The notes beneath the pieces were generated by a model. It did not search any database, had not been told where the DNA came from, and saw only the letters and a list, made by a program, of their open reading frames with translations. Position numbers and translations under genes: made by a program. A stretch of 64,000 bases of DNA from Diadema antillarum (lineage: Eukaryota), in contig NW_027271046.1 in the NCBI RefSeq assembly GCF_040938485.1, positions 992,001 through 1,056,000 of the forward strand, read 5' to 3'. Below are positions 9,601 to 57,600 of the stretch, one piece after another. The number at the start of each line of letters is the position of its first letter. Position 1 is the stretch's first letter.

Positions 9601-12600
9601 ATGAGTTATCACTGAAGATGAAAGGGGTATGAAATAATGCTTGCACCACAGAACTGTGAAGATTTTAGCAACTTGAACACATCTATCTATCAAAGCAGTT
9701 GAAAAATAAGTCAGTAATCTGTCACAGCTAGTCATGGAGCCTTATGAGTGCCTACCCATAGTCGTTTTGGATATATTTGGTTATTTGTATTTATTTGGGT
9801 TACGAATGTGCTTTTTTTTTTTTTTGGTAGATTGCTTCATATATCAAAAACGCTTTCCATAAAATATGTTTTTTTAACATTGCCTGAAGATATATACTAG
9901 GATACACCATGAAAGTGAATACAATTTAAACACATTTCATTTTCTTTTTGGTCTTTATAAACAGCACAAAACAAATCACTAGAGTCATACAAAGCTACTT
10001 TGACAACTGCACAAAGAGGACAATAATTGTGAGCATCTATACCCGAGGATGCCATGGCTGATGCTCTACTGGATATGTGCATCTTAATTTCTCCAATCTT
10101 GCTTAACTCTGAGCTGATCTGCGATTCCTCGAAATGATTTCATGGCCTATACACCTCTTACCAAGAAGAATCTGCAATACAAATGAATTAAGGAAACAAT
10201 GTCCTGCATAATCATATCTTACCAGGCGAGGATAGTCAGACGACCGCAGCCACAGGCCCAGCCAGGCATTTGTAGAAATCACAAAGCACTTGGTGAGAAG
10301 GATGAGGAATCCAGTGAAGAGGATGATGGGCCATCCTCCTCCATAGTGGACGTAGGAGCGGTAGGTTGCCATGGAGATGATTCCCGATTCCATTTCCTCA
10401 TCCTGAATGAGCTTACCTGTAAACATGGAAGGGAATGAAAATGTGGCTTCCTGTACAACATCACATAGGCCTATGTATATGCATGTATCTCAGATGGAGG
10501 ATGGGAGGCCTATGATTGAACAATCCTCCCAATTTGCAACAAATTCCTGTTTCAATGGCTGAAAATGTCATTTTTTCTTCTAGCACTGAATAAAGTGTAC
10601 ATTAAAAGTATTATACAAACAATGCTGTTGAATAAACCTACATGAGATGGCCTTAACCTAAGAGCTTTTCCTTCTTTTTTTTTCTTTTTTAACCGAAAAA
10701 GGCCAACAAAATTTTAGCCAGGGGCTCATTTCTGGCTCTTCTACATCCACTTTCTCTATATATGCAACTCTTCTAGTTGTTTCTATAAAAGGGACTTTAT
10801 ATGAGGCAAGGACACAAAACCTCTACCATGAATAAAACATACACATCTATGATGCATGCTGTTAAAGTTACACTGAGTAGTTATGAAGTTTCAAACTTTT
10901 GCAGCATACTTGCAAGGGTGATTCTTGAGGGTTATTGATGTGTTATTACTGATGTCAATAACTATGTTTTAGCATGCTACTGCCATCCCGATACTGTAAC
11001 TTGCTCATTCTATGAAATAATCTTTCTCTGTTGAAAACATAGACCTTTTTCAAATTTGACATGGGGTATAGATGAAGGCACTGCATTGTCTTGTGAAATA
11101 AACACATGGAAATCACATGGATGCCTTTATTATTATTTTTTTCTGCATGATATGGCATTTGTTATATTCCATGCTATGTTGGAAGTGAGAGAGAGAATAC
11201 ATACATGACTATTAGAAAAAAAATATCAGAATCACTCCCTTAATGGATTGAAATATCTTAAGAGATATTACATCAAAGAAAATGAAAACAGGTAAACAAA
11301 AGAAAAGTAAGCAAAGGCAGAAAGAAAATTGCAGGTATTGTGCTATATTAAGAAATTTTCTCTTCATGTACCTGGAGTGTTCTTGTTAACATTTTCAGGT
11401 GTGGCCGCATCCTCTTGAATCTTTCCCTCCTGGTGGGATGCGGGATCGCTCTCAGTCCGGTCCCGGTTGTCCGCCTCCTCCTCCTCCTCTCCTTCGGCTT
11501 TCTTCTCCTCTTTCTTCACCTCCTCTGCCTGCTCCTCCCCCTGCTCCTCCTTCTCCTCAGCAGAGTGGTAGGTCAGGATGAGTCTGGCGTATTCCCCCCG
11601 ATGCTCCATCAGCTCTTCGTGGGTGCCCGTCTCCGCTATCTCACCATCTTTCATGAGGAGGATGTGATCGCAGTCCTTGAGGTACTGCAGGAAGAATCAG
11701 ATATGAAGATAATGTTGGAGGAGAAATCCTGGCAAACTAAACCCAGTGGACCATAGAATGAGGTAAACATAGAATGCATTTAGTTTTAGAGCTTACAATG
11801 TGATAATACCCATCCCCCCCCCCCCCTAAAAAAAAAGAAAGATATATGTAGGACTTTCATGCCCCAATAGAATTGGTAGCCCTTGATAGTAAGACTATTG
11901 ACTGAACAGTATGGTTCCTACAGAAAGGAGCTGCACACAACAAGATGACCTGTGCAGACCATATAACAAAGTGACACTACATATCATTGATGAAGAAATA
12001 ACCATGGATTACTGAATATTGAATTTCATTAAATACTGCCTCATCTCCACAGCACTTCACATACACCTACCAATGTCCAAATAAAACTGTATGGAAGTCT
12101 AGTATCAGGCTGCAACCTTGAACAGACTAATACTGCAAGCAGGTAGACTTTCACTCTTTACGTTGGAGCCCACTACTGCATTGATTAAAGCTACATTATA
12201 TGTTCTGGTAAAAACAAACAAGGTAAATTTGGCAGTCTCAATCTTCCATTATACATGTAGTATCTAGTTGGTCTCTACTTTTGCTTAAAGGGACTGTACA
12301 GTACTGGTTGAGGTAGGGATCCATGTTTTGAACATTCCTAAGTGAGATAATGAAAAGCCTTTTATGAAATATGAAAGAGCATGTAATTTTAAGAAGGATT
12401 CAACGTTTATTTGATGAAAATTGGTTTTCAAATGGCTGAGATAGCCACAAAAGTGATAATAATAAAAGGCGACATGCCACAACTTTATTAGGATGTCTTT
12501 GTTTCACCTTGTTTTTTAATATCTCAGCCATTTCACAACCGATTTTCATCGAATAAAGTTTTGATACCCCTTAGAACTGCATGCTCTTTGACATCTCATA

Positions 12601-54600: not shown

Positions 54601-57600
54601 TAAAACTTTCTCGAGATTGGAAACAAGACTGGCGCCTAGTTAGCATGGCACTCAGGGTAAATGTAGTTGATCCGTGTAAAGATCATAGATTTATCTAACA
54701 AATTACATAACATAGTGCACATCGTTTCATATTGGCAGCGTGATTCTAAGTTTCTTAATACAAAATTTGATTCATGGTAGTATTATAACGCCAACTATTT
54801 TAGAGAGGGAGCGGCTGTCGAAAGAGGTATAGTTATGTTTGTTTTTTTTTAACCTATCCTGTATCTGGTTTTTGGGAATGCCTTACTACATGATATCCCC
54901 ACATTACTGGCGTAGTCACAAGATCAAAGCACAAGGATACATCTTGCAAAACATCTTGTTTCAATGCGAATACTGCGTGGGATTCTAAAACCACACTGGG
55001 CTGCAACACGGTCATATTGTCACACCACAATGATTTCGCCACGCTGTGATTCACATGAAAACCGGGTAAATATTCTGCACCGACTGTCTGAATGGCCTTC
55101 TACTGTCTATTTCAAGCATACAGACAGCAGAACTATGTCTTTTTTGTTTGCTTTTCTACTAGTCAAAGGGAGCTTGAAAGAGGGTTATTACTCACAACCG
55201 GTAGCATCAGACACTCACAGTCCAATGGCGGGCATGTGTATAAAAAAAAAAATAAGAAAACCCCACAAAAACACCACTATTCATATCAAACAGTCGTGAC
55301 TTGTCAGAGTAGGCCTACTCTGCTTACATGCGCTTATGTTTTAATAATATGTGCATTAGATAAAGTTGTACGCTGTTAAGTTTTGGGCATGAGTACCTCA
55401 AGATGCTAGTATTGAAAAATCTGAATAATTTATGCTGCCACGATTTTTTAAACAATTGATATCAAGTATGTCTCAGCAGCAAGACCCATTCGCAGTCGGT
55501 GATACTCAGCGAGCATTTCAGATCAGCAAGATGCTTTTACAATGAAGTTGATCGAGTACGAAATTTGTGATACCATGTTAAAGTTGACTAGAATAAATAG
55601 GAGTAAAGGCACCTACTTACACAGGCAGTATAGCTCGGGAGTTAAATGGAAACTGGATTTACGATTATACTATCTACGTTGATCTAAGAAGTCATGAATT
55701 TCGAAGTTTCAGAGTTTTCAACAAAGGGTGCTTTTATTCGCTGCCATATGTAATTAAGGGAATGAAATCAGGCGGTGGCGTCATTCATTACCTAGTCATG
55801 TGGTTGTGACTAATAGTACTTATATTCAAAACGTGCAAATATATTGAGTTGATGCGAGTGTACACATATAGCAAAGAAATTAACAATGACTGGTCACAAT
55901 TCAAAACAAACTTTGCAGTTCAAATTCGTCGATGTAGGGCAATGTGTCAATCAGTTGCACAAACTTTGCAGTTCCTGGTAAAAGAAGAAAACGATCATTG
56001 TCAAATTTCTACCGGCCTACATGTAAGTGGGACCCGTTTTGTTCTGGTGAATCTTTTACCTTTTATTCATCTTGTCTGTCTCCACCACGTCGTTCCCTCT
56101 TTTCCCTTTTTTCTTTTTCCTGTAGATGTCTTCAACATCCTTGAAGATAACTATACCTCCGTCAAGTTTAAAATGATCGTTTCAACCTCCGCAGCAATTG
56201 ATTTATTTCGGAATAATACGTAAATTTTTACCATTCATTGTGTTCGAGGACACTTTCAATCGGCATTTATTTTGTCAAGATTTCATACTCAAATATAGGT
56301 GAAATTGAAAAAGAGGAAAAGAATATCACGTTCCTGTAATTGCCGTCATTGAAAATACCGTCTTTCCTCCGTTACTAACGACGAGTTTCGATTGCAAAAT
56401 GTGTGACACATTTTGTTCCTGCGAAAATTGCTCCAGTCTTATTTTCTCCTTACGGTTAGGGTTGTGATATAGTGTTTTAGGTTTAGTTTGATGTCAGGAT
56501 TATGATTAGGGTTAGGGTTATGTTTGTGGGTAAAAGTTATGTTTGGCTTAGCACGCAGATATGTCATGGGAGCAATTGTCGCCGGAGCAAATGTCATGAA
56601 ACCGCAAAGTGACCTGCTATTTCGTACGTTGTCAGCCCTGAAGGGCCCTCACGTCACTACTTCCATTGGTTGCTCTGATCAAGGAGGTACTCTTGCCTAG
56701 TACCTCCTTGCTCTGATTTCCGCTCAGACTCTCTTCAATCTCGGATGTGATGACCAGCACTGACTCTTCGACAAAAGTGCGTGTTACAATGATCGAGTGA
56801 AGCAACGTGCGCTCCACCTTTCTTGACGTTTTGAGCGTGTGTCCGTCGGCGCAATAAATTAATGGAAATAACAATCAGCAGTAGTCCGACCATGGAGCTA
56901 TATCTACAAGCAAGTTGCAGCTCCACGGTTTAGATGTTATATTTACAGGCTCAATGTAGGCCTACCTCCTATAGATTACATTCAATATCAGACCACTATT
57001 AGAAAACGACATCGCAAAAAAAAAAAAATTATTTTATGTTCCATCAATGTAAGAACAATGTGAATGTGAAGTGGGCAATCCATTTATGTTGTAATCTTTC
57101 TTTGATGCATAAATGACTTATGCATTTTTTTTTTGTATTTTTGATGTGAAATGGAGATGGGCAATCCATTTATGTTGTAATCTTTCTTTGATGCATAAAT
57201 GACTTCTGCAATTTTTTGTGTATTATTGATGTGAAATGGAGAATAAACAAACAAGCAAACAAACCACACACATACGCTGCAACCGCACAAAAACGCAACA
57301 AATTCACATTGTTAATTCTCATCCAAGAATGCTTCGAAATCAAACTTCTGTTGATACATTGTACTCAAGAAGGCTTCAATTTCACACAGTCAGTTTAAAT
57401 CCAACAAACATTCTTCCAACACACACAAACACACGCACACATCAAAGCACACACACACACACACACACACACACACACACACACAAAGAAACAACAACAA
57501 GCCCCAAAGCAAACATAAGAAATTTGTCACTCAAAGCGTTTTCAGCGTTCTTACCTGTAGCTGGTGAGTGACAAAGATCGTTGTTTTCCCGCGCAATGCC

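Follow-up and report, generated by a model that had tools for sequence, protein, structure and literature searches.

A gene nest in the intron that divides the first nucleotide-binding domain of an ABCC5-like transporter from the sea urchin Diadema antillarum

Genes nested within other genes are common, and two-thirds of human nested genes lie antisense to their hosts (PMC4394429). Compound nests have also been described: a single intron of human NF1 holds three coding genes (OMG, EVI2A and EVI2B), while human MOB2 harbors 13 nested genes, among them the six paralogs KRTAP5-1 to KRTAP5-6 (PMC4394429). The locus considered here lies in a 64,000-nucleotide stretch of the genome of the sea urchin Diadema antillarum (RefSeq assembly GCF_040938485.1, contig NW_027271046.1, positions 992,001 to 1,056,000 of the forward strand), hereafter called the window, in which a 45.9-kb intron of an ABCC5-like transporter gene contains four genes of the sialidase-1 (NEU1) type, antisense to the host, and one TMEM60-like gene on the host strand. 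Like NF1 and MOB2, this locus consists of several independent coding genes, mostly on the opposite strand, that lie wholly inside a larger host gene, and host and guests appear functionally unrelated. A paralog array among the guests is shared with MOB2, and the crowding of multiple coding genes into one intron is shared with NF1. The locus differs from both in that its host is an ABC transporter whose intron cuts the first nucleotide-binding domain (NBD1), in that its guests are a tandem array of NEU1-type genes together with one sense-strand gene, and in that the nest has been traced to an ancestor shared by sea urchins and sea cucumbers, with duplication in place. Seen beside the human examples, the rarity that the initial annotation of this DNA ascribed to a paralog array within one intron was overstated. 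Its remark that the arrangement was not known from the literature holds in part: a literature search found no paper on an ABCC-sialidase nest, but the arrangement is already present in public annotation.

The constituents of the locus can each be compared with described proteins. Human ABCC5/MRP5 (structures 8wi0 and 8wi2) shares with the Diadema host the domain order of a full transporter and a length of about 1440-1480 amino acids (aa). The designation "ABCC5-like" follows the structure match and the RefSeq name and is provisional within the ABCC5/11/12 group; the naming is mixed, since RefSeq applies "ABCC5-like" and "ABCC12-like" to two near-identical Diadema copies, and fragment matches are named ABCC5-, 11- and 12-like. 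Four copies of NEU1 have been reported in each of the sea urchins Strongylocentrotus purpuratus and Paracentrotus lividus, in a study that could not assess invertebrate synteny (Giacopuzzi et al. 2012, PMC3431349). The Diadema guests agree with that set in their number of four per urchin genome, while the location of all four in a single ABCC intron was not described there (PMC3431349). Their closest named relatives are of the sialidase-1 type, including urchin proteins named "sialidase-1-like", and with vertebrate NEU1 they share the BNR_2 propeller at 42-45% identity; unlike vertebrate NEU1, they have three coding exons rather than six, and copies 3 and 4 carry RTP and APR instead of RIP and EAR. 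The remaining guest resembles TMEM60 (PF10269, the Tmemb_185A family) in its small size of 129 aa, in the lack of introns from its coding sequence and in having relatives named TMEM60-like, and differs in its sense orientation inside a host intron.

The reading best supported, with a probability of roughly 85%, is that the window carries part of one intact, full-length ABCC5-like gene in which an ancestral phase-0 intron, placed after the H-loop codons of NBD1, has turned into a gene nest. The corresponding RefSeq model in assembly GCA_040938485.1 is XP_071489521.1, a protein of 1476 aa that a cluster look-up names "ATP-binding cassette sub-family C member 5-like". Residues 400-1272 of this model equal the window translation, with an exact match in 13 of 13 window exons as established by tblastn and an exact-match walk; the latter showed canonical splice sites and continuous numbering throughout, and placed the join of VTHQLQ to YLKDCD between residues 745 and 746. 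Pfam matches along the 1476-aa protein follow the order ABC_membrane, ABC_tran, ABC_membrane, ABC_tran, which corresponds to transmembrane domain 1 (TMD1), NBD1, TMD2 and NBD2 in one polypeptide. The motif set of NBD1 is complete, comprising Walker A (GSTGSGKS, in the host exon at 57926-58201), the ABC signature, Walker B and the H-loop.

The two exons that flank the intron, here called exon A and exon B, can be followed to the base. On the minus strand, the donor side reads ...CACCAGCTACAG/GTAAGA, with the boundary between 57555 and 57554; exon A ends in ...ACTCACCAGCTACAG, its final base being 57555, and is directly followed by GTAAGA. The acceptor side reads ...CCTGCAG/TACCTCAAG, with the boundary between 11685 and 11684; exon B has 11684 as its first base, starts TACCTCAAGGACTGC and is directly preceded by ...TTCCTGCAG. 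Both boundaries fall between codons (phase 0), and the predicted spliced junction of 57555 to 11684 would read …CAGCTACAG/TACCTCAAG…. Among solved structures, human ABCC5 is the best match for the NBD1 exon: exon A, with its 68 aa, aligns end to end with residues 678-745 of chain 8wi0_A (E 2e-34), and exon B takes up the alignment on that chain, its first 43 residues matching positions 746-788. The two exons thus abut on human ABCC5 between residues 745 and 746, so that no residue is missing between them. A tblastn search revealed no ABCC exon within 11685-57554. The intron accounts for about 51% of the 89.8-kb host gene, in which the next-largest introns measure about 6-6.7 kb, and the remaining eleven introns in the window range from about 167 to 3852 bp. 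All five guest units lie between 16955 and 50775, inside the intron, with ordered host exons of the same strand on either side. On these points the initial annotation, which had proposed the two phase-0 splice sites, the continuous H-loop join HQLQ/YL (residues 745/746 both in XP_071489521.1 and in human ABCC5), the lack of further ABCC exons in the interval and a single intron of 45,870 bp beside eleven small ones, agrees with what was read directly on the minus strand and by tblastn.

The same layout recurs in other echinoderms. In the chromosome-level assembly of Diadema setosum, of which 20 kb were examined, the order of sialidase 1, TMEM60 and the downstream host exons is collinear with that of D. 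antillarum. In one assembly of the sea urchin Lytechinus pictus, a gene encoding a 1470-aa ABC protein covers the 20-kb TMEM60 locus from end to end, sharing its strand with TMEM60, and the sialidases run antisense to it; the first ABCC exon beyond TMEM60 in this species is preceded by AG and starts with YLKDCD, and at least three sialidases are arranged in tandem at a spacing of about 9-10 kb. In the sea cucumber Holothuria leucospilota, a gene for a 1369-aa ABC protein spans the locus, and the junction consists of a donor ...VLFVTHQLQ/GTAAGA and an acceptor AG/YLEECDSIILMKNG, the next exon beginning with YLEECD. This phase-0 intron of about 20.3 kb contains one antisense sialidase-1 gene, and a tblastn search for TMEM60 in the H. 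leucospilota locus returned chance-level matches only (E up to 10). TMEM60 within the host intron was found in echinoids only. The closest homologue in the starfish Acanthaster planci, an MRP5-like gene of 16.4 kb in total, has an intron at the identical position after THQLQ that measures about 100 bp and is free of guests. In the sialidase loci of one crinoid, one brittle star and one hemichordate, the sialidases are likewise in tandem, and no ABCC exon was detected within about 10 kb.

In a maximum-likelihood (ML) tree of the sialidases, the copies from Holothuria join those of the urchins in a single clade (support 95/94), the guests group with deuterostome NEU1-like genes, and sialidases 3 and 4 are sisters; the sialidase 1 type is common to Diadema and Lytechinus and predates the split of these two genera. 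Sea urchins and sea cucumbers separated on the order of 450-500 million years ago. The nest is by all appearances old, since a sialidase occupies the same intron in Holothuria leucospilota. The initial annotation had put forward the size of this intron and the position of the sialidases in relatives as a point for comparison, and the outcome is in keeping with one host gene: the intron is large and occupied by sialidases in L. pictus and H. leucospilota, and is about 100 bp long and empty in the starfish homologue.

It must be considered whether gene predictors have joined two independent half-transporter genes, a 5' unit with TMD1-NBD1 and a 3' unit with TMD2-NBD2, across what would then be a five-gene intergenic region. 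A 708-aa product called from exon B in one L. pictus annotation and the failure to find a junction read would both agree with this view, which is nevertheless very improbable. The split falls inside NBD1 directly after the H-loop, such that the final ~40 residues of the domain would be missing from the 5' unit and would open the 3' unit; with the cut placed there, the ATP-binding domain would be incomplete in both halves. Canonical phase-0 splice sites are present at both boundaries, the arrangement retains its order, strand and phase in Holothuria and Lytechinus, and the Acanthaster intron at the same position is only about 100 bp long, the exons there plainly belonging to one gene. Gene models join the flanking exons in three species, namely D. 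antillarum (in both assembled copies of the locus), L. pictus (in one assembly) and H. leucospilota. From these gene models, from the position of the cut within NBD1 and from the tiny homologous intron of the starfish, a single host mRNA is inferred. The proposal of one ABCC gene with an NBD1 split by a giant intron is accordingly retained, on account of the models that span the intron and the ~100-bp intron at the Acanthaster position.

Several observations nonetheless weigh against a single intact gene of this history. The junction-spanning read or transcript that the initial annotation had named as a check did not appear: none was present in a single small public run, where the sole unique match was a 193-nt contig that lies inside exon B and reaches neither splice site, and a search of a protein collection with host residues 600-900 for fragments across the junction, itself weakly informative, yielded best matches that were at most 63% identical, none of them from an urchin. 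In the other L. pictus annotation (GCA_037042905.1, 12586-20390), exon B is the start of a distinct product of 708 aa, so at least one annotation pipeline divides the gene at this intron. For the Acanthaster protein, identity is just 43%; at that level one-to-one orthology, and hence a small ancestral intron, is tentative. Finally, the absence of ABCC exons from the outgroup sialidase loci rests on flanks of about 10 kb. The coordinates of the host exons, the intron and its guests are collected in Table 1.

Table 1. Host exons, giant intron and guest features, in positions of the window
Feature	Position	Strand	Description
Giant intron	11685..57554	-	Phase 0, GT..AG, 45,870 bp, without N
Exon A	57555..57758	-	Residues 678-745; LSGGQKQR signature, Walker B IYLLDD, H-loop; ends VTHQLQ; donor GTAAGA at 57554
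Exon B	11370..11684	-	aa 746-850; starts YLKDCD; C-terminal NBD1 strands and acidic linker
Upstream host exons	63814-63963, 59854-59961, 59133-59438, 57926-58201	-	tblastn/exact match
Downstream host exons, first group	10223-10417, 9376-9561, 8324-8452, 6928-7212	-	Downstream set: TMD2 and start of NBD2
Downstream host exons, second group	5718-5906, 4331-4423, 3410-3607	-	Downstream set: TMD2 and start of NBD2
Sialidase 1	18994..21619	+	NEU1-like, 374 aa; exons 18994-19615, 20572-20669, 21215-21619; YRIP, SEARK
Sialidase 2	27613..31441	+	NEU1-like, 377 aa; exons 27613-28249, 29651-29742, 31037-31441; YRIP, SEARK
Sialidase 3	37278..39493	+	Exons 37278-37966, 38366-38460, 39089-39493; frameshifted; YRTP, CAPRK/SAPRK
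Sialidase 4	46079..50775	+	372 aa; exons 46079-46700, 49759-49853, 50374-50775; YRTP, SAPRK
TMEM60-like	16955..17344	-	Intronless coding sequence, 129 aa, host strand; PF10269 E 1.5e-11, above cut-off
CpG-rich block	18000..19000		Observed/expected 1.1-1.6; between divergent starts of TMEM60 and sialidase 1

A second full copy of the locus, with host, four sialidases and TMEM60, is present on the same contig about 600 kb away (record 381206-477316). Its host is XP_071489513.1, a protein of 1473 aa with the RefSeq name "ABCC12-like", and its giant intron measures 48.8 kb; nucleotide identity between the two collinear D. antillarum copies is 95.4% across about 71 kb. Each of them is about 85% identical to D. 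setosum, which indicates that the twin arose long after the two species split. The assembly GCA_040938485.1 is uncollapsed, with 1.75 Gb against a haploid size of about 0.7-0.9 Gb and 84.4% duplicated BUSCOs (PMC13511894), and for this reason the second copy is most likely the other retained haplotype rather than a paralog, a real recent segmental duplication being less favoured. Whatever its origin, it documents this layout in another assembled copy.

The inflation of the assembly also bears on whether the intron could be an artefact, produced when foreign sequence or a haplotig was placed between exons that are in truth neighbours. This is exceedingly improbable, because the interval 11685-57554 contains no N, the layout is common to two separately assembled copies within D. 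antillarum, and it is found again in D. setosum (over the 20 kb examined), in two L. pictus assemblies and in H. leucospilota. The sole run of N in the window (7987-8253) sits in another host intron (8323-7213), outside the giant one. Continuity across the interval, on which the initial annotation had made its proposal depend, is supported by the unbroken sequence, the second copy and the relatives alike. As a separate observation, positions 7987-8253 are free of N in the public contig.

The guests on the plus strand are four genes, each with Pfam matches to BNR_2 (PF13088) and/or BNR_3 (PF13859) in both of its halves. The three-exon models were rebuilt here and reproduce the annotated lengths of 374, 377 and 372 aa. 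The canonical F/YRIP and E-x-R motifs are present in sialidases 1 and 2 and not in sialidases 3 and 4, although the motif Arg is retained in the latter two despite their YRTP and CAPRK/SAPRK. Judged by eye, the N-termini of the sialidases look hydrophobic and signal-peptide-like. Logan contigs of 1.5-1.9 kb from other species encode full relatives of 376-381 aa that are 61-69% identical to sialidase 1, and the length of these contigs suggests that they derive from spliced mRNAs.

Sialidase 3 departs from the other three in its reading frame. It has GGGGG near 37782-37786 where the second copy has GGGG, and the extra G causes a 1-nt frameshift with a stop at 37788-37790; read through with an X at the break, the protein has 395 aa, which is the length called on the second copy. 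The extra G may represent a null allele or, alternatively, a homopolymer error. The public annotation of the window copy contains three sialidases and TMEM60 inside the host, the frameshift being the reason why sialidase 3 was not called as a protein and only three are listed. Of the five-gene cassette originally proposed, the four antisense NEU1-type genes and the sense TMEM60 are therefore upheld, but a fourth intact sialidase is not borne out in the window.

The open reading frame (ORF) of TMEM60 has an identical counterpart among the proteins of contig JBFRCO010000158.1 in GCA_040938485.1, and the proteins named "transmembrane protein 60-like" are 99% identical to it in D. setosum and 74% in L. 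pictus. TMEM60 stands head-to-head with sialidase 1 across the CpG-rich block, a candidate shared bidirectional promoter whose role is possible on base composition and gene orientation. Within 4 kb downstream of TMEM60 no AATAAA was present, only ATTAAA variants. Independent promoters of the guests are considered likely.

Elsewhere in the window, no non-coding RNA matched Rfam at the gathering threshold, and ten leftover ORFs of 91-172 aa (nine of them intronic) had no Pfam match. Interspersed repeats at 12285-12672 and 15765-16099 reach a contig depth of up to about 1100 in the public run, with many variant copies. The acidic linker of exon B (11425-11617) is Glu/Lys-rich and length-variable; the sole public-run contig shows a 3-nt deletion in it, and the second D. 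antillarum copy has 9 nt (3 aa) fewer in exon B. The sialidase-1 model of H. leucospilota spans 62 kb (10001-71959), of which residues 1-396 map within 10001-16921, and its last few residues probably represent a mis-joined distant exon.

The nest is established as regards its anatomy, its gene models and its conservation, and its origin may be envisaged in four steps. An old and initially small intron, of the order of the ~100 bp seen in the starfish homologue, would have been entered by a NEU1-like sialidase on the opposite strand in the common ancestor of urchins and sea cucumbers. Duplication in place would then have produced, in echinoids, the tandem array of four members with its 2+2 structure and ~9-kb spacing, and the intronless TMEM60 would have been added in the same group, on the host strand and head-to-head with sialidase 1. 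As presumed for nested genes generally, transcription of the host would run through all five units, with subsequent splicing out of the 45.9-kb intron, and the guests would use their own promoters and terminators. The nest has most likely been kept passively, since few rearrangements could remove it without breaking the host.

An alternative to passive retention is a coupling of host and guests, in which transcription of the sialidases and TMEM60 would impede elongation of the host, expression would be mutually exclusive, and this switch would have been under selection since the urchin-sea cucumber ancestor. The anti-correlated expression and half-transporter transcripts put forward in the initial annotation are predictions in the same vein. 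An antisense sialidase does occur in the same intron on both sides of that split, the majority of gene overlaps lack conservation between vertebrate lineages according to one study (PMC2151771), and inverse regulation has been proposed for nested pairs on opposite strands (reviewed in PMC4394429). However, most nested genes are functionally unrelated to their host (PMC4394429), the content of the nest is not fixed, as TMEM60 is missing from the Holothuria intron and the copy number of sialidases varies, and passive retention explains the same facts; coupling is accordingly regarded as unlikely. Slightly more doubtful still is the stronger form of the idea, that the antisense NEU1 nest acts, under selection, as a regulatory device that throttles or truncates the host transcript, with mutually exclusive expression or a product truncated after TMD1-NBD1. 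If true, it would mean that a putative exporter of organic anions or cyclic nucleotides has been coupled to sialic-acid catabolism since the common ancestor of urchins and sea cucumbers. Any functional link between transporter and sialidases is speculation.

The nest is real, conserved and ordinary in kind, and no new kind of genetic system is involved. It bears on annotation in that pipelines are led to split the host where a conserved domain is cut by a giant intron with five guests, as in one L. pictus annotation, and a near-identical second copy in an assembly that is uncollapsed needs checking before it is taken as a paralog. For the sialidase family, all four known echinoid NEU1 copies are now placed at one locus. 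For the echinoderms, the locus provides a datable series of nest states, which leads from an intron of about 100 bp in the starfish homologue, through one of 20 kb with a single guest in the sea cucumber, to introns of 46-49 kb with a four-member sialidase array and TMEM60 in the urchins.

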